From: Saccostrea echinata
Taxonomy: Eukaryota
Assembly: GCF_033153115.1 (NCBI RefSeq)
Contig: NW_026889776.1
Span: 2,604,001-2,668,000, forward strand
DNA length: 64,000 bases
Reading direction: 5' to 3'
In this document: positions 7,290-43,030 of the stretch, in pieces
Position numbering within the stretch: position 1 is the stretch's first letter
How the letters are laid out: each line of letters opens with the position of its first letter
Translations under genes and position numbers: made by a program
Notes under the pieces: generated by a model
What the model was told of the DNA's origin: nothing
The model's database searches: none
Seen by the model: the letters and a program-made list of their open reading frames with translations, nothing else

Positions 7290-8228
7290 TAGGAGCATTT
7301 CCCTCTTTAAATCAAGTGGTTTAATATAACTTTTCAAGATTACTTTTATCTAACTTCATAAAATGGTACAAATTGTTGAGAGAAATTCACGTTAAAATTG
7401 TCTGGCTTTAAAATTCCTTACGACATAAAAATGCATTTCTTCAACCATCCATACTATAACATATCAAACATCCATACTATTACATATCATGCATGAATTT
7501 GCAACATAGAGATTGAACGTGAAACAATGAGACTTAATTGATCCAGTAGATAGAAAGATAGGTTGAACCAACACTATAAACGTTGCTAGTTGCTACAAAG
7601 GCAACAACTGTACTAAAGGTATCAGTTTTGTACATGTATATGAAAAAAAAAACAAAATTTAAAACCGTTCAAGTCACTTCCTCTTTCTTCACGGTAGATT
7701 TTAACCAAAATTTACTATAATGACAAGTTATGCTCCTTTTCTAAAATAATTTTCATATAAAATTTATGGAGCCCAATAATAATGCTTTCCACTTATCCGA
7801 TTTTGTTAGATTTTTTATCACATTTATTTTTGCATTCTGAGTTTATGTATAACAAAAATATTCTAATGCAATCACATGTAGTTTGATGTTGGAGGATATT
7901 AAAATTGACTGGACTATAGCAGGTGAGACTACAAGCATAATGTATTCAATGACACGATTTTTTTTTAATTTTACGAAACTCTTCAATTCTTAATTGTGCT
8001 AATTAAAGAGGTGGTTCCAAAATCTTTGCCCTGGTTACTATTACTCGTCTGTTAAAAGCAGATTAGATGTATGATGTAATCCTAACTTCATCATTCATGG
8101 AAAATAGATGAAAAGAGAATTCTTGCTGCATCCTTTAACATTTAGACAGAGAAATAAACACCACAGAGTATGCTACATCTATTTCATATCTGGATATTTT
8201 ACTGACTATAGGTGATAATGCCAACTAA

Positions 8229-8608
8229 GGCCATTCCAAGTTTTTTCTCTGTTTAGCATCCACCCATCTTTCAAAAACCTACCTACCCATTCGCAAAAAA
8301 CACACAAACCAAAAAAATAAAACACAGACTTTATAGTCGTAAAAATGATGTCATTCAAAAGATTTGATTTGATAAATCTATTTCCCTTGTTGAAAGATCT
8401 ATTCTTAGCAAAACCGAGGTAATAAATGCTTTAAATATTCCTAATATGACATACTGTAGACAAATATTTATAGAAATTAACAGAATTCAAAGATTTTGAC
8501 CAGAATAACCGATTTCAGGACTCCTGATTCTGTTTGTTTTTTCTGATATGGGATGTCAAAAACCAAAGCGCACACGGACGCTAAACATAGAAAAAACTTG
8601 GAATGGCC
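8229..8608. mobile_element. PIF/Harbinger (Tourist-like) MITE
   Basis: TIR GGCCATTCCAAGTTTTTTCT with 3-bp TAA TSD on both sides. An inverted second copy lies at ~37452-37835. Confidence 0.8.
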
Positions 8609-8611
8609 TAA

Positions 8612-9070
8612 TAACTAAACTGTATGACAAACGGGATGACTTCAGCTTTTCCATCGTTCAACTTCCCTTATATGTAGTAATATTTCAACATCACCTGAAT
8701 ATGGTGTTTAAGTCTCCAAATTGATTTATTACACAAGGACAAGCTCCAAGTACGATCAGTTTTTAAACAGAGGCAGGCTACTGACAAAGAAGTTGATTTA
8801 AACCTCATTTACAGTAAGCGTTTTTTTTTTTTTTGCAAATTCTAAGGTCGTTATAATGCATTGTTTGCAAATACAACCTATCGTTGGGTTGTATTTTGTC
8901 CAATATATTTCATACCAATTGGTTTGACCAGTCGACAGAGGATGCTTACTCCTGGGCACCTGATCCTGCTTCTCATTTCAAGGGGTTGGTGTTTTTACCC
9001 TGTTCATGATTCATATTCTTCACTGGATTTATGAGACTGATCACTGTTTGTTAACTACATCTTTTTCATG
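8612..9070 (+). mobile_element. Degenerate retroelement 3' fragment (Penelope-like RT C-terminus)
   Basis: Broken translation TKLYDKRDDFSFSIV.FP...SPEYGV..S.LI. Same family as 13380-15065 and 54580-55000. Confidence 0.6.
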
Positions 9071-9469
9071 AAGTGTGTCAATAACAATATTTTTTAGGTC
9101 ATCTACTTTATAATACATGTACTAACTTGAAAAACATAGTTCACATAGCACTGAAACATGTTTGGTAGTATTATCAGAATTTCATCCCTTCATACGTAAT
9201 GCATGCTAAGATCAGGAAGGATTTATTGTTCCTTACAAACTGAACACATATATTCAACCTGTTACAATGATACTACAAATAGAGCATTCTGCAAAGCTTT
9301 TTCCAGTTACTGAGGTAAGCTAAAAATTGCACAAAAAACTCTTATATTTAAATGAATCAGTTTAATAATGCTACACACAAAATGAATGACATGATAAACT
9401 GTTTGGTTTTAAGATTTTAAAAGTTCATCAAAAAAATACAACAAAAGATGAAGACGCAACAGTCATTGC

Positions 9470-12400
9470 TCAGTATCTGCCATGTCTTCCATCCCTTTCT
9501 CTGGACCTTCTCCTCTCTCTACTACGTGACCTTGACCTACGTTCCCGTGACCTTGATCGCCGACGCTCTCTACTGCGGCTCCTGCTTCGTCTTGTAGGTG
9601 GTGATCGTGAACGTGATCTATAAATAAATTTTAATATGTTAGTGTAAATTTATTTGAGTACTTTTTAAATAATCAATAAATTTCAGTTTAACAAACAGAA
9701 GGAACAATCTACTGAGGTTTTCTTACCTTCTAACCTTTCGACGACTTCTGCCATAGAGTTCACGTCTCAATTCTCTGGAAATCGGCTTCAAGTGCATAAA
9801 GTTACAAAAACCACCACGAGTACACTCACTTTAAACAGACAGAAATGTACAATGTTAGTATAATCATAACATTATATGGGCCATGGAAGATATTTACATA
9901 ATAAATTCCTAATTAACCAAAAATAGGCATGACAATAAATCCCTTTGAAATGATTGTCTTACCCCATTTCATACTGCCGACAACATGCTTCTCGGAAGTC
10001 TGTGACTGGTGACAATTCTGCATGAACTGGTCGGCCATTGAACCAGCGATTGTTCAATTCATTCACAGCTTTTTCTGCATCTTCCTCATATCGAAACTGA
10101 AACCAAATTGTTTACATTCAAGGACCATTTTATATGTACTATAATACATGTATTATGTAGTAAGTTTTTTTTTTTGATTTGCTGTAAAAATATTGATGCA
10201 GTACTGTAAACCTGAACAAATCAATGCCATTTGACAGATTTGTTTAGATCATATGCAAGATTTCATGCAGGGGTACAGGCATTTTGTATGTAAGAAAGAA
10301 ACAATGAAAAAATTGGCCTCTGATTCTATAAGTTGCCTTTCTAAACTATCACTAAAAATTTGCTAGACAGTGTTTTCCTCACCTTAACATAGACATTTCC
10401 CACCAAATGGTCACCCAGGTTGTCACAGACATTCATTTCTTCTATCTCTCCATACTGAAAAACAAAAACCACCAATCTATCCCAGCTTACAGCTTCTGTC
10501 TCAGAATAACAATTTATAATTTACAATTTTATAATTCCCAATTTACAAAGATTTAACTATTCCATTTACTTAATACTGCTTCACAGCAGAATAAATATTT
10601 CAAATAAAACTGTTGTCAAAATTTTTATTTCTTTGTACCATACGACACATCAGAATACATAGTAATTACTAACTGTACTGCTTGTATGTGTCCCCTTCAC
10701 AGGTGGATAAATATCAATGAGAACCATCTAGTGACAAAATTTACCTGTGCCAAACACCATATATATGACTACATGTACTCAATTAGGAATCTAGCTCTGT
10801 ATATTTGTGTAATTTCAATGGACTTTAAATATGTATTCTTATGTACGTAACACATTATTAGGGGGCTTCAGGTCCTACCTTCTCCAATTCTACATAAACT
10901 TCTTCAAAGAATTCATCATAAAATTGTTGTAATTCTGTATCGTCCATCTGGACTACAATGAATAGAAAACAGAAAAAAGCTAGAGCTGCCAGAGGAATGG
11001 ACAGATTAGGTCTTATCTCTACATTATAAATCTACAAGAAAAAACATCAGTATTCTCTGCAGTTAAACCAGGCTTTGGTTTGTGAAACATGACATTTTTA
11101 TTTGTTTCAACTTACCTTTCTTATTCTTTGACACAAGCAGAAGCACAGAGGTCATGTTAAAAGAAATGCAATTATTCTACAGGGAAAAAAATATCCCCCC
11201 AGAGAAAGAAGCTCTAAGTAATGCAGTGTGTTTGCCACAAATAAAAATGTCATGAATGGTCTTCTCTGGCAGCACCACTGATTTCTACAAAACAAAAGGG
11301 ACAACACACGTGGCCGACCTTTCACCTTATAAAGGACAGGGCCATTGGTCAAAATCCCATCAAACTTTGTACAATGTTTATATTACCAAAATATAATCTG
11401 CCAAAAATTATTCAGACAATATTCTATCTTTCATGGAGTTGTCTTTTTCTATTTAAATAAACAGATACTGTCATAATCTTGAGGAAAATTGTATGAATTG
11501 GACAAAAAAAAAAATCATTGCACAAAGTTTGCTGTCAAGAACCACCTCCACTTGGAGAGGAGTTAACCCTCAATTGACAAAAAAAAGTAGAGGAGAAATA
11601 GGCCGACATCGAGGCGAGACCCATCTGTTTGTGCTGAATGAAGAGGATGCAACACTGTTACGTTACCTTATCCTCTAACTCAGTAAAAACTTCCTCGAAA
11701 AAATCATCATAATTTTGCTGGCCTTGTACATCATCCACAGGAACTGAAAATCAATGCACAAACACTGACTCCAACTTATTATCATCATCCATGAATACAT
11801 TAAATTCATACATTTATGAGTTGCATGTGCACATAGAATTCATGTGCTTTAGGTATGCTTTTGGCATGAATACATGTGCATGAAGGAAAGTACATGTTCA
11901 ATTTAAGAAAAAAAATTATATGCTGATAGTAAGGATTCTGAGATATATTGAAAGGGCAGATCTGTTAGAGAGCTTTAAATGGTTCATATTTGTTTCTAAT
12001 TGAGGTCCAACAAAGTATATGTTGCAGAGTAACAGATTTAAAGTTTTTTCCCATAATTTTTCTGTCTCCGGGATCACTTCTAAGAATTTAAAATATTTGT
12101 ATTTTCTCCTGAATCTTTTTTTTTTCAATAGATAATGAAATGACTGAAAAATAATCCAGACTTTAAAAATACAGTGCAGGGTTTTATTGCTACCTTTTAG
12201 TCTCTCTTCATATACTGTACCTACTACCATGGGAGTGTCTTTGTCAGTATCAATCTTGGTTTGATTCTGATGTAGACATTTTTTGTATATAATACACCCT
12301 GTTTAATATGGAACAGTGGATGATTCCTTTGACATTTAGAACTTCAATGATTCATTTCTTGCTTCCTGTGTATGATACCTGCCTAAGGCATACCTAGAGC

Positions 12401-15400
12401 ATTGATTCAAAGGCTTTTAAGCTGTACCTATAGATTTTATTTTTTGTGTTTGCTCTAATAAAAACATATGAATATAAATTAAACATGTACTTGTGTCACA
12501 ACAAAAAATACTACATGTATCAGGTATCCATTGTGTGAAGCAATGATAAAATGGATATAAAAAATATTGTAAATTTTCTGACATTAAAAATTTACTTGTT
12601 TTCATATCTATTTAAAATTCAAGTTTTCATTCAAACACAAATTTTAAAGAAAGTTACAGAATCTTAAAGTTGGGCACTGGATGGTAATTGTACGTATCAA
12701 TAGAGGGAATTGTACACTATTTCTAAAACTTACTATGAGATCCATCTGCAGTCAGTGCTGTGTTCTGAGGGTTCATGTACAAATTCTCAATTAGTACTGT
12801 CTATAAAGAGAATAAAACATTGATCTGTCTTCTCAATTTATTCAAACAAAAAGAAAGGAAGTCAAAATTGCAAAATTCAGAGAGTAATTGTACCTACCTG
12901 ACTGAAAGTGGGTTTGTTGTGAAGACGTGAACAGCGTTCTCCATGTCGACAAGCTCCAATTTTGAAGTAAAATGAACAGTTTACCCTGAAATATATTATG
13001 TATCAAATAATGTATATATAAGTGAAAGGAAAATTTCTCAGGGAATGTAATCATATACAATCAAACACTTTGGCCTCAATCAAACTAGATGCTTGGAATG
13101 AATCAACATGACAGAAAACTTCCAACAAATTAATTCAATCACTTTGGCTTCAATCAAACTAGATGCTTGAATGAATCAACATGACAGAAAATTTCCAACA
13201 AATTAATTCAATATAGAACAACATACTCTGCATATTTTTCATAGTTTTATTTGTATCTGGGTGGTGGGTACTCAGAAATTTTTGTAACTTGTGATTGGTC
13301 ATCAACAAAATTATTTTGTTAAAAACTCTGATTCTACACAAAAGTACTGTAAATTTTATATCAAAAGGATGCTAGAGTCCCTCATTGACAACACCTATGT
13401 AGTTCTCACAGACCAGATCTTCTAACAAACTTGGAATTTCTATGGGCACTAATTGTGCTCCTTTATTAACATACTTTTTTAATATTCCTATAGAGCAGAA
13501 TTTATTCAAAAACTTCTGCAGGAGAAGAAAACATTTGCTGTGGCTTCCAACTTGACATTCAGACATATTCAAATATATCCACAAGGTCTTATCAATTAAC
13601 AATATTTACTTCCATTCATATGTTGACTTGATATATTTCAGTGAACTTGAAATACATGTAAAAGACACCACAGAGTCTGCCACATCTGTTTAATATTTGG
13701 ATGTTTACTCACTATAGACTATAAGACCAACTAACGACTAAATTGTATAACAAACAAGATGACTTCAACTTTTACATCCTCAACTTTCCTTATTTATGTA
13801 TCATAAATCTGCTAACAACTGGACATGGTGTTTATGTCTCCCAACTTATTTGATACTTAATTGCATGCTCCAATTACAATCATTTTTTTAAACCAAGGCA
13901 GGCTACTGACAAATAAGTTGATGTTACAGGAATTTTAACAACCTTGTTAAAGTCAAGGATTTATCAGCCTATTTTGGGAAAGGCCATTTTTGGGGAATTG
14001 GGAAAATATTATTGGCTATTTGATGAAATTGGGAAAAATTTAAAATGTTGCTTAAATCATGTATTCAGGTGTTATTCATTTAACATTTCAGCATGAACTC
14101 TAATTTGGGCACCCAAACAGACAATTATAAATATGATCCAACTTCATCACATAAGATCAATTATGAAAAATAGACCAATAAACGTAAAATTGACTTCAAC
14201 GAGTATAAAACATTTACCTATGCAACTTAGGGTAGTACATGTGTGTATGAGATTCCAATTTCGGTCATTACAGAATCTTTTTCTGGAGATTATAAACCTA
14301 CTACAAAAAATTATACAAAGTACACATTTTCTCCGTCCTCTTTTAATATGTATTAAAACATTGAAAATATATTTTTCTATCTGAAATAATGCCTACAGTC
14401 TTTACCATTCACTTGTAGATCAATTGAGTAGGTGGATATAATTTAATAAATCTATACAGTTACACAATATCACCATTTTCAGAAAAAACAGAGGAAATTC
14501 GGATTAAAAGTTGGCGATGTTTTTACAGCATTTTTAAACATGTGTTATGACTGTAGCTTTGCTAAATGAGTTATAGATGAAAATTAAAGACAATCTGACA
14601 ATTTTACTCTGTGTTTTTCCAAGATAATTAAATATAAAAGCATTGTTCACCAATTTGGGAAAAAATACTGCCAAATTGGGAAAAACTGAACTCATTTTCA
14701 ATTGGGATTGGTGCTGAATTTCGGCCCCTGAGAAGGTACTAATAAATCCCTGAAAGTCAGCATTTCGTAAATTCTATGGTCATTATAATGACCTTGTTAA
14801 CAAATATAACCTATCATTGGGTCATATTTTGGCTGACATGTTTCATATCAATTGTTAGGCCTTAGTTTTTACACTAAATTTGATGATGGAATGTTCATCA
14901 ATACATAGGAATCAAAGCAGGTGTGGCTGGTCAACAGTGGATGATTACTCCTCCTTGGCACCTGATTCCACCTCTAGAGGTCCTTGTTTTATGCCCTGTT
15001 CACAGATTTTTATTGTTTGTAGATTTTTTGAGATTGATCACTGTTCGTTATCTTCACCTTTTTCATTTAAAAGAACTAGTCAAAAAAAGTTATTAAGTAA
15101 ACAATATAATAATCTTAATTTTTTTTCCTTAAGATGCCACATTTTTTCCATGAACTACATATTTAGAGACAAACTATAATAATGGTCTTGGGATAGATGT
15201 ATAGGGTAGACTGTCAAATTTCGAAAAATGAATAACAGTTTTTAGCATTAAAAAAAAAAAAAACACTGTATAATTGAACTGTACCATCTTATCAGAAATT
15301 TGTTAGGATGTCTACTGAATTTCAGGGTAACTGATTTACTTTCCAATGTTTTTGACTAATATTTTTGCAGCCTTTTTCATTCATTTTGGGAAGAATTTTA

Positions 15401-16991
15401 CATTGAAATCTTAAAACATTTGTGAAAATGGTTAAGGACATATGCAATGTATTTTAAGCTTTAATTTCTTATTTCCTGTACAATAGCTTCATAAGTCCCA
15501 CACTTATAATGTCAGTATATGATCTTGTGCACCTCTTCTCAACAATTTTTAGGAAATACCAGCTATGATACATTTTTGGTAATATTAGCACATTTTTTTT
15601 TCTTTTTCAAAGAAAGTGGCTACCTTCGGCCACATACCTCAGATCACTTGACTAAACACTATAATCTAGTGTTATGGTGGTTTAATTTAAAAGAATGTAT
15701 CTTGATCTACTAAATATTAACTCATCTCAGGTGGTAAGTGAAGACTGACCCTAACCTCTTGGGTAGGCGCATTTCAAAATGCCTGCTTTTCAGTAGGGAA
15801 ATTGGGACGAATTTAGGTCACCAGCAGATTTTAATTCACCATGTGGGAAAACAAGATATAAAATCTACACCTCCACACCAGTTGTCAAATTGGCTAAATT
15901 GCCAATGAAAAAAACCTTTGAAAAACTCCTAAATTTTAACAAATTTTATATCTTCCCACTATATTCTAAAACTGGCAAGTTCCTTGCCTTAGGTTTAAAC
16001 TGACGAGATTGGCATACACTGGTAAACCTAGATAGAACGTTCTATCGTTAAAATGACATTGTCCTACGGACCCGGTTTAACGATAGAATTCGTTCCGTGT
16101 ATTGGCAATGTAGCAAAATAAACACGGGCGATAACTCGAACTCTGTGCATTTTCTATGAACAATCCAGAGAGTTCCGAATGTCAACATGGCGTTAAATTT
16201 GAAGCGAGGAAAAAATGTTGAGAAAATGAGTTGAATTTTCGTATTTATATGGATTATTTTTTAGGTTAAAAGGCATATACAATCTCAAAAAGGTTTGTTA
16301 TGATTAACTTGGTTGTTATTTTCAGTGCAACTCCTTTTGTATTCTTCAAAATCATTTCGGAGTGGATCCACTCCGATTTGCTACATTGCAAGTATATGGG
16401 ACGTATTCTAACTGTGGTGAGGGCTTGTCCCGAGACACAGTTAGATTATTCTAACTATGGTAAACCTTCCCCCATCAAATAAAGCAACAAGCTGGGTTAC
16501 GAAAGGTCAAATGGTACATTCAGCATAAGCCAGTTTGAAAATTAAGTAAAATCTCTGTGGTTTTATCTAGATTTGGGCTTGGATTTTTATGTCTCTGATA
16601 AAACAAGTAAGACATGATTTCCAAATGATCTGACATCAAAATGGAGTTTCTTAATTCAAGTCATTCTCTAAAACAAACGTAATATACAAACAAAATATAA
16701 GTACACTATATCTATTATGAATCTCAAATTTGTTTTCCTGTTTTTTTTTTCTTTTTTTTACCGTACAGATACAAAATCTGCAGCTAGCTGCAAAAATCAA
16801 TCTGGATCTGGTTTTGTTATATTTAACTAATTTCAGAATTTCATGAAACATCTGTAAAAATGATATTGTAAAATTAACTATAGTTATCATCAAATGCTTA
16901 AAAACAGGCCTTATACTACTGAATATGAAGCTGGAAATTAGCATTACTTGTCCTTTTCTGTGCCAAAAATCGACGCAAGGTACTCAGCCAT
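9470..16991 (-). CDS. U2AF1: Splicing factor U2AF 35 kDa subunit
   Basis: Exons 16948-16991, 12898-12985, 12734-12800, [11667-11743 or 10879-10952], 10383-10454, 9963-10096, 9727-9828, 9470-9617. Protein [44 protein letters not shown]...[25 protein letters not shown]...[44 protein letters not shown] followed by an RS domain (two CCCH fingers, UHM, RS). Confidence 0.98.
10879..10952 (-). CDS. U2AF1: U2AF1 alternative exon 4b (74 nt; (I)[24 protein letters not shown])
   Basis: Polypyrimidine tract plus ttgtag acceptor, AAG|GTAGGA donor, phase 1 to phase 0, open frame, paralogous to exon 4a. Confidence 0.92.
11116..11284 (-). other. Candidate cryptic/poison cassette exon inside U2AF1 (169 nt, or 61 nt from the internal acceptor at 11176)
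   Basis: Acceptors cccttttgttttgtag|11284 and tttttttccctgtag|11176 share a consensus donor AAG|GTAAGT at 11116. The long form has stops in all three frames. Confidence 0.5.
11667..11743 (-). CDS. U2AF1: U2AF1 alternative exon 4a (77 nt; (I)[25 protein letters not shown])
   Basis: ttttcag acceptor, AAG|GTAACG donor, phase 1 to phase 0, open frame, homologous to the UHM acidic helix. Confidence 0.93.
13066..13211. repeat. Tandem duplication of ~74 bp
   Basis: cactttggc(c/t)tcaatcaaactagatgcttg...caacaaattaattcaat occurs twice. Confidence 0.9.
13380..15065 (+). mobile_element. Degenerate Penelope-like RT fragment interrupted by a MITE
   Basis: Remnants [44 protein letters not shown] with frameshifts and stops. 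Confidence 0.65.
13954..14752. mobile_element. MITE with CA(A/G)GGATTTAT termini and 5-bp TSD (hAT5-like)
   Basis: AAAGT|CAAGGATTTAT ... ATAAATCCCTG|AAAGT. Confidence 0.75.
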
Positions 16992-17128
16992 GTTTTCGAC
17001 TAACGCGGAAACTATGACGTAGCACACAAGTGCACAGTTTCCGTGACGTAGTTTGCATTCAGTGTCAGAGAAGGAAGAAGTGGACGATATGAGAGATTGA
17101 TTTTTAGAACAATTACAGTATTTAAACG
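16992..17128. promoter_or_regulatory. Putative bidirectional promoter of U2AF1/PSENEN plus PSENEN non-coding exon 1
   Basis: CpG-enriched stretch directly upstream of the U2AF1 ATG with two TGACGTAG (CRE/ATF-like) sites at 17015 and 17044. Candidate donor ACG|GTGTGT at 17128. The first PSENEN coding exon begins with an acceptor (ttacag|20505), so an upstream UTR exon is needed. Confidence 0.6.
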
Positions 17129-17438
17129 GTGTGTATATTAATTAAAACATTAAATTAATATTTTGTTTATAAAGTACATCAAACCAAGGACTTACAAGGG
17201 ACAATCTTCAGCAATTTTACCAGCAAGATAGTTTTAACATCCCAAATTTGTATCCATTATTCATTTTGGTTTTTAGCCAGTTAAATAAAATGTCTTTTAC
17301 ATTTGACAGCTTGAAAAATCATTTTACATCTAACAGAAGGTATTACCTTTTTATTGCCATGAAGGTAGAGGACTAAATGTTTTTGTCAAGTCTGAGTTAT
17401 ATCTATCTGCGAAAACATTAATCATATTAATATATATC

Positions 17439-17877
17439 TGCAGAACTGTATTGTTATGGTTTTATATTTTAGTCTTTGACCATAACACCACAGATCCCGT
17501 AATGTAAATGAAGTGCAATTTATGGCACAAGATTTTCTGCACACTTTGGGGATGTATTTTGCCAATTTCCAGCAGTAGTTAATCAACGACCCTTCATCCC
17601 CTAATTTTAGACATATTCTATAACCAACCTGTATATTTTATCCACCTCCTAACCCTTTATAGTCATCTCTACAGACCAATAAATTCGCTTGTTGTGAATT
17701 TGTTGTCAGATGGCTAACGAGTTTATTGGTCTGTAGACCAATGCTGGAAAGTGGGGAAATACATCTCCAAAGTGTGCAGAAAATCTTGCTCCATAAATTG
17801 TACTTTATTTACATTACAGGATCTGTAGCAGTATGGTCAAAGACTAAAATATAAAACCATAATGCTACAGTTCTGCA
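17439..17877. mobile_element. Foldback/palindromic MITE in PSENEN intron 1
   Basis: Outer arms of ~140 bp (TGCAGAACTGTA...CCAGCA / TGCTGG...TACAGTTCTGCA) plus inner arms ctacagaccaataaa / tttattggtctgtag. Confidence 0.8.
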
Positions 17878-39393: not shown

Positions 39394-40779
39394 GGCCATC
39401 ATTAACATGATTAAAAATATCTTTGTTTCCCCTAACCCGACCCTAAAATCTCAAGTTGGATAGGTAGGTAGGCAAATAATTTTTTTTTTCCTGATAGCAG
39501 CTTTGAAAATACATTCTGCAATTTAATGGAATAATACCTTTATAAATGAAAGAAAGTAATTTGTAAACAGAATATCAAACAATTGCCGTTTAAAAGCAAA
39601 ATTTAAGGTAAATTTACAATTCACAACAATTATTCCTTGTAAAATATCTCAAGAAAGTGTAAATTTATTGAAATCAAATGCTAAAAAAAGACTTTAAAAA
39701 TACTTAGATACGTAAAGACTAGACATCTGAGTATATTTTTCAAACCTACTATCAGCTTCAAATGCTTACATATGCAGAGTACTTTTTCAAGGGCCTCGAA
39801 TTGTGAATTTCAATTTGGGGTCCCGAAGTAAGAGCTACAATGTAATTCTAAGTTGCAGGTTCAAATCACATTGTGAGACGTTGAGACCGGTCAGACTGTA
39901 AAATTTAGGCCCAGTGTCACAGTAGATGCTGGTACAAAAATGATCCATCACTGCTCAATGGTAAAAAGTGCTGAGTTCAAGTCTAAATTTGGAGCCCTTC
40001 ACAGTTCTCAAAGGAAAGTTCTTAAAGTAAAGAAACAACCTATCTCCAAGGGCCTAATTAAAGAAAAGTACACTGGACGTCTCAGGAAGCTGTATCACGA
40101 TTTCAAAATTATATTTGGAAAGAGTTTGTAAACAATATTCAATTGAACCAAACCATGATCTAAAATGATAAAATGTCATACACGATGTCATAGTCATGAA
40201 GCTTAACCCATGAATAAAAGGCATGAATAAAGAACGTCTGAATTTTATTCGTCGGAATGAAATATCATATGCACACATATTTACAACTCCTGTAGTCACA
40301 TATAGTAAACATAAGAACATAAATGAACGGTCTCAGATTAAATAAATTTAAAATTGATTGATATGTTCACAAGGTTGGCCCCTCATCTGCTTTTAAGGTG
40401 ACTACTCTGTACCTTAATTTTAAAAGATAGGTTTGAAAATATCACCAAATCACAATTAGTCATAGTGAATTTTATTAACGAAATGTTACAAGTGAGTAGG
40501 ATTCTAATAAGCTAAAGGCAAAAGGTGAATACGTCACAAGAACCCTCTGAGACCACAATGTTATGGGCACCATTTTGTTTCCAACGAACGCTTGAAAATC
40601 ACAGTAGATCAAAATCGGTCATTCTCATAAAAACCGGATTTTGGTGAAATTGTATTTTATGAAAGTTGATGAACAATAAAAAAAAAATTTGAATAAACTT
40701 ATTTAAAAAAAACTTTTCAGTCGGCGATTTAATTGGGTCGGTCGCGTTAGGGGAAACAAACATATTTTTAATTTTGGCC
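39394..40779. mobile_element. Harbinger-like MITE with an internal SINE-like fragment (~39850-40030)
   Basis: GGCCA...TTAAAAATAT.TTTGTTTCCCCTAAC pairs with GTTAGGGGAAACAAACATATTTTTAA...TGGCC. Internal B-box-like GGTTCAAATC. Confidence 0.55.
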
Positions 40780-41448
40780 TTGCCGAGAAATTATAACAGT
40801 CAAGTTCAAGAATGCTTAAAAAAAATAAATAGCAATTACATGTGATATATTGTATCTATCATATATTATTGGAAATCACTAAGCACCTTTTCCTTTATGC
40901 GCTATTTCATCAATATCTAAGACATGTGGGTCAACATGCTCAATTTTACATGTCAGCCACTTTTATGAAGGTCTATGTCTCTTCTATGCTCTTCTTTTTT
41001 CCCTAAGTGGGGGACACAAATTCTCTGAATTAGCTTGTTAAATATAAGGTAAATGACGTCATTTTTTTAAATAGTAATGAAAACAACATATAAGTTCATT
41101 ACTACATTTAGCAAAGAAGAAATAAATTTTAAAATATAATTCAGAGAGTAATGCGGCATGTTTACCGATTATGGTGATGGAGTTAGGGTAGTAGGGGATA
41201 CCATAAATGTGTGACACCACAAGGTTTTGTCAATATATTACCCACAAAAAATTACTGCACGTTCTTCTGATTTTATTATTGTTAACCATTATTTACTCTA
41301 TAAATTTAAATCCCGATATTAGAAATTTATTATATAATTTTTCTGCATGTTCTGTCTAGAAAATTAATTACAGGCCTAATTAGTACGGAGGATATTGCAT
41401 CAGATTCAGAGGCATATATTCTTATGTTTCTGCTCTATCTTTCTAGTG

Positions 41449-41676
41449 ATGGACAGTCAGGTGGCACGAGATGGCCGTCTGATGGAGTTAGTGGATGAGA
41501 AATGGAGAGAAGACAAACTCCCAATGGAGGAAGTCGCTGTGCCGCAGATGGAACTCCCAGAAATAGAACCAGACAATGGACCAACCAATGAGACCTTAAA
41601 AGAGCAGGAACAAAAGTGGACTGACTTGGCTTTGTCATCACTGCATGATCAGCCTCCTGCGACCACTAGTAACTGA
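41449..41676 (+). CDS. ANAPC13: Anaphase-promoting complex subunit 13 (75 aa)
   Basis: MDSQVARDGRLMELVDEKWREDKLPMEEVAVPQMELPEIEPDNGPTNETLKEQEQKWTDLAL matches APC13. Single coding exon; AATAAA at 41995. Confidence 0.95.
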   Translation: MDSQVARDGRLMELVDEKWREDKLPMEEVAVPQMELPEIEPDNGPTNETLKEQEQKWTDLALSSLHDQPPATTSN

Positions 41677-42516
41677 CTAACTGATAATCATACAGAGTAC
41701 CCTCTGGTGTTTATACGAGGTCAAAAAAGTATTAAGTGTAAGGTTATCATTAAAAGTGATGATTATTCCCCATCTTCAGACATAATTTTTAATATATATG
41801 CTACCAGCATGACCAATCTACAATTTCAAATAATAATGTCAAACACTTTTGAGAAAATTGGAAGCTAGGACTAGTGGATTCCTGAGTGTGCAGCTGTACT
41901 TGTGAAGTCCATGCAGTGAAATGAACTTGGTGAGACCGAAATGAATTATGGACCAAGTGAATTTCAATCAGCAGATGTATCTGAATTATTTTAAAATAAA
42001 TTTTATCAAAACATAGTATTGTTTATTACATTGCATTTCATTTTGAACATAGCTCGTGATCAGTACACTTCCAATGCATATAGTTGTCATGAAATACACT
42101 CCATATACCATATTCATTATTATTTTCTAAACTTTAAATATAGGTAAAATGAAGATGAGATGTATGCATTATTGCAATCGAACTTTACCTTGACCTTTAT
42201 TTGATCAAATTCAATCTTAATCATGCAAGGATGCTCAGAGGCAAGTTAGGCTAAATGGTTCAGAAGATGAAAATATAGTTTAGAGATAGATATATGTGCA
42301 GGAAAGCTCATTTGAGCCTAGAGTGAGGTAAGAGGTACTTCTTGCTTTCCCTTGACCACTTTAAATCTGCTATGACACTGCTTAGGATGAATATCATTGC
42401 TATTTGTCACCGTACTCCAGCATACTTCTGACTTGGCGCTGCATTATATAAGGAGCATAGGAACTTTAACCAAGGCTCTTACTTGTAGGAGTACCTATCA
42501 CTGGTGATGAGTGAAT

Positions 42517-43030
42517 TTTTATGCCCCCCTCCTTGAAAAAGTGGGCATATTGCTTTGATCTTATTGGTCAGTCAGTAGACCAAGTGTTGTCCTCTCATAG
42601 TCTAGAGAACCCTTTGACAGACATCAAACTTGGTACATGTGCACTGGCAACTCCTGATGAGTAGATGACCCCTATTGATTTTGAAGTCACAAGTTCAAAG
42701 GTCAAGGATCAAATTACAGGTACTCTAGACATAGGAAGATCTTGTCCATTACAAGTACAGTAGCACCTGTACCTCCTGAAGAGTAGACACAGGAAAATTT
42801 TAGTCCATTCAATATCTTGAGAATTACCATTTGCTTGACGGACATCAAACTTTGGTACACAGTTTTTTCTAAGGAGTAGTTGACCACTGTAGATGTTGAG
42901 GTCACAGGGTCAGAGGTCAAGGGTCAAATTACTCTAGACATTGGAAGATACTGACTGCTCAATATCTTGAGAACCCTTTACTTGATCGACATTAAACTTG
43001 GTACACTGGTTACCCCTAGGGAGTATATGA
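42517..43030 (+). mobile_element. HINE-type fragment with tandem units
   Basis: ttttatgcccccc...gggcatattgc start; repeated gacatcaaacttggtaca units. Confidence 0.5.

Follow-up and report, generated by a model that had tools for sequence, protein, structure and literature searches.

A tandem pair of probably mutually exclusive U2AF1 exons encoding the UHM acidic helix in the oyster Saccostrea echinata and other molluscs

U2AF1 recognises the AG of nearly all 3' splice sites, mutations in it drive human myeloid disease, and what its vertebrate a and b isoforms do is still debated. A 64,000-nt stretch of the Saccostrea echinata genome (the window, in which all coordinates given below are positions) carries a complete U2AF small-subunit gene (U2AF1, encoding U2AF35) on the minus strand, and in this gene two similar short exons, 4a and 4b, lie in tandem between exons 3 and 5. 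The question raised by the locus is whether these are alternative versions of one coding segment and, if so, how old the arrangement is and what it provides. The answer reached here is that 4a and 4b are likely to be tandem mutually exclusive exons, so that the gene would make two forms of U2AF35 which are identical except in the loop and acidic helix A of the U2AF homology motif (UHM).

The gene model was obtained by reading positions 10500-13200 and 9200-10560 and by a three-frame scan (Table 1). Exon translations gave the domain order, with the first zinc finger (ZnF1) in exon 2, the UHM in exons 3 to 6, the second zinc finger (ZnF2) in exons 6 and 7 and the arginine/serine-rich (RS) tail in exon 8. 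Between exons 4a and 4b, 16 of 26 residues and 51 of 75 aligned bases are the same. Each exon begins in phase 1, ends in phase 0 and is bounded by an AG acceptor and a GT donor, the donors matching the consensus at 7 of 9 positions in 4a and likewise at 7 of 9 in 4b. The coordinates, lengths (77 and 74 nt), peptides, phases and residue identity of the two exons, first set out in an earlier note made from the letters of this DNA, were all reproduced on rereading the sequence. The same note had held that the duplicated exon is not the one duplicated in vertebrates (exons 3 and Ab), and this stands: the 67-nt exon is single, the next exon is doubled, and no second 67-nt (NPQN-type) exon was found between exons 2 and 5.

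Since 77 and 74 both leave a remainder of 2 on division by 3, a transcript that takes both exons, or skips both, is thrown out of frame and soon meets a stop. On translation, the 3-4a-5 and 3-4b-5 combinations gave open U2AF1 sequence, and the 3-4a-4b-5 and 3-5 combinations gave early stops (within exon 4b and exon 5), which bears out the proposal that exclusivity is set by the reading frame. Transcripts with both exons or with neither would presumably be removed by nonsense-mediated decay (NMD). The introns, at 990, 714 and 424 nt (the last between 4b and exon 5), rule out steric exclusion as the mechanism. A 169-nt AG..GT stretch at 11116-11284 (minus strand) was considered as a coding linker that would restore the frame of a 4a-cassette-4b product and was rejected on finding an in-frame stop on read-through; if used at all, this cassette could act only as a poison exon. 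A repeat scan of 10383-12800 for docking and selector RNA structures turned up nothing beyond short AT-rich pairs, about as expected by chance. Intron 3 contains a stretch (12363-12376) that complements the start of 4a (11730-11743) at 13 of 14 positions, a pairing that could mask the 4a acceptor and that lies within chance expectation for 2.4 kb of AT-rich sequence.

The identity of the gene was established by protein matches. The translations of the eight exons in the 4b form are each found, letter for letter, in one database protein (P0217; XP_052675217.1, Crassostrea angulata isoform X3, also XP_061185359.1 and XP_061188944.1), which carries the Pfam domains zf-CCCH (PF00642) and RRM (PF00076). 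This match places the gene in an ostreid oyster. The UHM signature, as defined in PMC5113200, is present as an RXF loop (RWF) in exon 6 and an acidic-helix motif (FFEEV..E.E) in both 4a and 4b. Each exon-4 peptide searched alone matched the human U2AF35 UHM (1JMT_A) over the same chain residues, 27-50, with E-values of 8.6e-06 for 4a and 0.0025 for 4b.

A search of the whole 923-Mb assembly with the 4b peptide returned only 4b and 4a, at two copies of the U2AF1 locus. These lie on two contigs (C27 and C30) and are colinear over at least 33 kb at about 99.6-100% identity, as compared over window positions 7700-17700 and 40000-43000 against C30:2916000-2926000 and C30:2947873-2950873. The doubling may reflect a haplotype left uncollapsed or a false duplication, the alternative being a segmental duplication of very recent date; the two extra RefSeq accessions on P0217 would fit two annotated copies of the locus. 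Derivation of 4a and 4b from two diverged paralogues was rejected, the sole other U2AF1-type locus being the roughly 99.6% identical C30 copy. An interspersed repeat of about 780 nt was noted at 40000-40780; its copies, 72-96% identical, number in the dozens and are spread over many contigs of the genome.

To examine relatives, database U2AF1 proteins were found via exon 6 and then searched with the exon 3-5 region of those proteins. Isoforms of one gene, one with a 4a-like exon (type a, 26 residues) and one with a 4b-like exon (type b, 25 residues), were retrieved for C. angulata (XP_052675216.1, type a; XP_052675217.1, type b), Pecten maximus (XP_033757801.1 and XP_033757802.1) and the gastropod Gigantopelta aegis (XP_041372990.1 and XP_041372991.1), each pair on one contig and with consecutive accessions. 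Both types were also present in an X1/X2 isoform pair of Mercenaria, among five isoforms of C. virginica, and in Octopus (XP_029636792.1, type a; XP_052824283.1, type b). Type b alone was listed for the chiton Liolophura, Solemya, unionids, Haliotis, Patella, Littorina, Babylonia, Dreissena, Mya, scallops and Ostrea edulis, and type a alone for Lottia, Pinctada imbricata and six heterobranch gastropods. The S. echinata 4b peptide is identical to that of annotated Crassostrea and O. edulis isoforms. The note had named degeneration or absence of the second exon in related species as evidence against its reading; the relatives do not refute it, both types occurring across mollusc classes.

Exactly one exon-4 type per annotated isoform was found in the RefSeq pairs of C. 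angulata, Pecten, Gigantopelta and Mercenaria. Spliced contigs of about 1 kb likewise hold one type, two of them carrying a full spliced open reading frame with type b only (P0211 and P0259) and one a partial frame (exons 4-8) with a cephalopod-like type a only (P0283). The order of the tandem copies, a followed by b, can be read from gene models that run through both, in M. gigas (K1QZ58), Mytilus, Tegillarca, Mya and the gastropod Nucella. The models with both copies in one protein (P0157, P0161, P0165, P0166, P0169 and P0266) cover Magallana gigas K1QZ58, Nucella, Mytilus galloprovincialis, M. californianus X2, Tegillarca and Mya (named 'U2AF4-like'), and are probably mis-predictions caused by the exon pair. 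That several ab initio models wrongly join the two copies could be taken to mean that the RefSeq a and b isoforms are themselves gene-prediction artefacts and that the types are never alternatively spliced; we regard this as most improbable, since the short spliced contigs carry one type only, many species independently yielded this a/b pairing, and the long conservation of both exons demands use. In Crassostrea isoforms (P0255-P0258, P0268, P0178 and P0206) one to three extra residues precede either exon 4, which suggests alternative splice-site use at the exon 3/4 junction on top of the a/b choice.

Outside molluscs, a single 26-residue form of exon 4 was found in annelids, nemerteans, Lingula, one echinoderm, hemichordates and vertebrates. 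A search of metagenome contigs with P0217 returned no mollusc locus, only non-mollusc cDNA-like and genomic contigs, and the genomic ones (L065, L066 and L080) have one exon 4 between exons 3 and 5. A hemichordate X1/X2 pair was considered as a further exon pair and rejected, the difference being a 3-residue alternative acceptor. Because the outgroups have one form, the mollusc pair arose independently of the vertebrate one, in agreement with the origin proposed in the note.

The age of the pair was estimated from a maximum-likelihood tree of 51 mollusc and 10 outgroup exon-4 peptides, whose 26 columns are too few to resolve the inner forks. Type b formed a clade of 29 exons (support 95/88) from bivalves, gastropods, cephalopods and the chiton, and type a a clade of 22 exons (support 93/81) from bivalves, gastropods and cephalopods. 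Mean identity was 85% among type b exons, 80% among type a exons from outside the heterobranchs and 57% across the two types. Orthologous exons thus group across species, without concerted evolution, and the cross-class a and b clades are explained by one duplication before the conchiferan split. As dated from these peptides, the duplication predates the separation of bivalves, gastropods and cephalopods, and it probably precedes crown Mollusca, that is, the branching off of chitons.

Selection on both copies was assessed by comparing 4a with 4b directly. Nei-Gojobori estimates gave a nonsynonymous divergence (dN) of 0.26 and a saturated synonymous divergence (dS), and of the 16 residues that are identical only 8 are encoded by the same codon. 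In 20,000 simulations that scattered the 24 base differences at random, only 0.08% of the outcomes were stop-free with at least 15 identical residues, and the similarity of the two exons is judged not to be due to chance. Saturated dS together with a dN of 0.26 and a conserved open frame indicates that the copies are old and that both are held by protein-level selection; the suggestion that both exons are under selection is upheld by these values and by the conservation of each type across mollusc classes.

Each type is marked by fixed residues. By exon position, type a has A/G8, F12, D14, F20, T21, L23 and D25, and type b has Q2, I/L8, Y12, E14, Y20, V21, M23 (L instead in oysters and Pinctada) and loss of D25, while Q9, Q10, D13, F15, F16, E17, E18, E22, E24 and K26 are invariant in both. 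In human numbering, Q75, D79, F81, F82, E83, E84, E88, E90 and K92 are kept, and the a/b differences are A/G74 versus I/L, D80 versus E, F86 versus Y, T87 versus V, L89 versus M, and D91, lost in b. Glutamates 83, 84, 88 and 90 and the hydrophobic FF.V core are thus fixed across the two types, with changes at 86, 87, 89, 74 and 80 and removal of the acidic residue at 91. Of the 29 type b exons, 28-29 have Y86 and V87 and lack D91; all 16 non-heterobranch type a exons have F86 and D91, and 13 of them have T87. Measured against the outgroups, each type retains some ancestral states and alters others. The six heterobranch proteins (P0115, P0151, P0152, P0153, P0158 and P0208) depart from this pattern in part: in four (Physella, Lymnaea, Elysia and Candidula) a type a-like exon carries the b-like, outgroup-like V21, and three of these four also carry E14, which suggests either that 4b was lost with a shift in the remaining exon or that annotation is missing.

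These residues were placed on AlphaFold2 models of both C. angulata isoforms, whose overall confidence is low (mean predicted local distance difference test score, pLDDT, 57 for a and 59 for b; 73-88 in the exon-4 region). In the models exon 4 corresponds to residues 67-92 and makes up a short loop together with all of helix A, which extends over H71-93 in the type a model and H71-89 in the type b model, a length difference that may be model noise given the mean scores; the shorter end in type b coincides with the one-residue deletion. The assignment of this exon to UHM helix A, the helix whose conserved glutamates face the U2AF ligand motif (ULM) of U2AF65 (U2AF2), was made beforehand from the letters and is confirmed by the models and by the 1JMT_A alignments. 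Foldseek searches with the P0217 (type b) model returned yeast U2AF1 (7C06 and 4YH8, E-value 1e-15) and human 1JMT_A (E-value 1e-09, TM-score 0.83 on the target). According to a review of UHMs (PMC5113200), the two UHM helices enclose the ULM tryptophan, the RXF arginine is salt-bridged to a glutamate from the first helix, and basic residues of the ULM rest against the acidic helix.

The consequences of mis-splicing open another reading, in which the pair serves mainly dosage control, with NMD substrates autoregulating U2AF1 and the a/b protein difference being neutral. Inclusion of both exons and of neither gives early stops here, the 169-nt cassette carries an in-frame stop, and the corresponding both-in and both-out transcripts of vertebrate U2AF1 are NMD targets (PMC5224494). 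Neutral differences, however, would not stay type-specific across anciently split mollusc classes, and dosage control is compatible with roles for two proteins; as a sufficient explanation it is considered very unlikely, and mutually exclusive exons that yield two proteins are preferred.

Several observations weigh against this preferred reading, most of them concerning the use of 4a. The S. echinata gene is annotated with the 4b form only, the S. echinata 4a peptide occurs in no database protein retrieved, and the O. edulis entry retrieved (P0218) carries 4b only. Compared with Crassostrea, 4a is changed at 4 of 26 residues, and the protein shows no change in its remaining 216 (hypergeometric p about 1e-4 for this contrast, our own calculation). 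The acceptor tract of 4a is also the weaker one (12 of 20 pyrimidines versus 16 of 20 in 4b), and 4a may be a minor or relaxed exon in the S. echinata lineage. Among the database proteins retrieved, type a was not found for the chiton, nor type b for any heterobranch gastropod. Removal of double-inclusion and double-skip products by NMD is an assumption, and the modelled difference in helix length may, as said, be noise.

From these points it could be argued that 4a is an unused relic or minor exon in S. echinata, that only the 4b protein is made, and that the pair, exclusive in ancestors, is still exclusive in Crassostrea: P0217, a 4b protein, is the only one in the databases for a gene with these exons, and 4a combines the localised changes with the poorer pyrimidine tract. 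Such a reading is thought unlikely. Exon 4a has an intact frame, an AG acceptor, a GT donor and every residue invariant among type a exons, its four changes fall at positions that are variable among type a exons generally, and a dead 4a would not remain open under saturated synonymous divergence. Exon 4a is accordingly expected to be used in S. echinata as one of two exclusive exons, and 4b, which has the stronger tract and the sole annotation, would be the major form.

Table 1. Features of the U2AF1 gene in the window.
Feature	Position	Strand	Details
Whole U2AF1 coding region	9470-16991	-	ZnF1, UHM with RWF motif, ZnF2, RS tail
Exon 1	16947-16991	-	
Exon 2	12897-12984	-	first C3H finger (ZnF1)
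Exon 3	12734-12800	-	67 nt, single copy, end phase 1; homologue of the vertebrate-duplicated 3/Ab exon
Intron 3	11744-12733	-	990 nt
Exon 4a (type a)	11667-11743	-	77 nt; 26 residues including split codon; loop and UHM helix A; donor AAG/gtaacg
Intron 4a-4b	10953-11666	-	714 nt
Exon 4b (type b)	10879-10952	-	74 nt; 25 residues; donor AAG/gtagga
Exon 5	10383-10454	-	72 nt, phase 0 to 0; downstream exon common to both forms
Exon 6	9963-10096	-	contains NNRWF (RXF loop)
Exon 7	9727-9828	-	
Exon 8	9470-9617	-	RS tail

On the explanation proposed here, exon 4 of U2AF1 was duplicated in tandem in an ancestor of bivalves, gastropods and cephalopods, and probably of chitons too, 4a or 4b would be chosen, one per transcript, and frame-shifted products with both or neither would be eliminated by NMD. 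The pair would most likely supply two flavours of U2AF heterodimer with altered helix-A contacts, either to the U2AF2 ULM or to the parallel C-terminal helix or to both, and the outcome could be isoform-specific heterodimer stability or 3' splice-site preference. Regulation of the a/b choice and a functional difference between the isoforms would be part of such an arrangement. A further step, offered tentatively, is that U2AF35 possibly gained a splicing-controlled dimorphism of the helix-A region independently at least twice (3/Ab in vertebrates, 4a/4b in molluscs), which would show a repeated need. In the nemertean Lineus longissimus, isoforms X1 (P0179) and X2 (P0174) are identical but for two exon-3 residues (N50Q and I53M), and this species may have a duplicated mutually exclusive exon 3, a further independent pair of the vertebrate kind.

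If this is true, animals with complex splicing repeatedly need two U2AF heterodimer flavours, and the mollusc a and b forms should show measurable differences in how they bind U2AF2 or in stability, as well as in the 3' splice sites they choose, with their use depending on tissue or stage. The mollusc switch is a natural replicate of the vertebrate one, independent and equally old, and argues for an adaptive value of variation in the helix-A region, with residues 86, 87, 89, 91, 74 and 80 singled out for U2AF2 binding and splice-site choice and with oysters, scallops and octopus as a tractable comparative system. The pair also flags the fused gene models (M. gigas K1QZ58, Mytilus, Tegillarca, Mya and Nucella) and species with an apparently unannotated isoform, such as 4a here.

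The full-text literature searched, which covers few subscription journals, contained no description of the mollusc exon-4 pair, only of vertebrate 3/Ab; papers without the mollusc pair include PMC5224494, PMC9741552, PMC12000136, PMC13280272 and PMC1808492. The remark in the note that no published description was known holds for this literature, and has to be qualified in that the isoforms are already in RefSeq for several molluscs. The pair is implicit in RefSeq isoforms and apparently undescribed in print.

Vertebrate exons 3 and Ab of U2AF1, which give the isoforms U2AF35a and U2AF35b, were reportedly described by Pacheco et al. in 2004 (J Biol Chem 279:27039). The differences between 3 and Ab fall in RNP2, a short loop and the start of helix alpha2 (PMC5224494, Kralovicova and Vorechovsky 2016), and isoform-specific expression requires U2AF65 and the parallel alpha6 helix (PMC5224494). 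The mollusc pair resembles the vertebrate one in affecting the same gene, in the tandem duplication of a short exon with a nucleotide count that 3 does not divide, in probably exclusive use with stops when both copies or neither are included, and in having its variable residues in the UHM, in or beside the helix A (alpha2) that faces the U2AF65 ULM. It differs in the exon concerned: the vertebrate exon has 67 nt and encodes residues 45-66, whereas the doubled mollusc exon is the next one downstream and encodes residues 67-92, the body of helix A, so that the mollusc pair is modelled to vary an adjacent and larger part of the same helix element. About ten residues and a one-residue deletion separate the mollusc copies, compared with 7 substitutions in vertebrates, and the mollusc pair is known from sequence alone. 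It also belongs to a different lineage and has an independent origin, with single exons in the outgroups between the two lineages.

Tandem-duplicated alternative exons in general are a subject for which Kondrashov and Koonin (2001) and Letunic et al. (2002) are said to be the sources. Within oysters, a mutually exclusive duplicated exon is reported for the C. virginica alternative oxidase (CvAOXA/B; PMC5589949), a gene unrelated to U2AF1 that serves here as context only. The recurrent, independent origin of duplicated-exon substitutions in orthologous genes is a general pattern described for human, fly and worm, with enrichment in ion channels and muscle proteins (PMC9741552, 2022), and U2AF1 is absent from the main text of that study. 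Like the pairs in that study, 4a and 4b are old, conserved homologous exons that substitute a region conservatively; unlike them, the mollusc pair lies in a core spliceosome-assembly factor.

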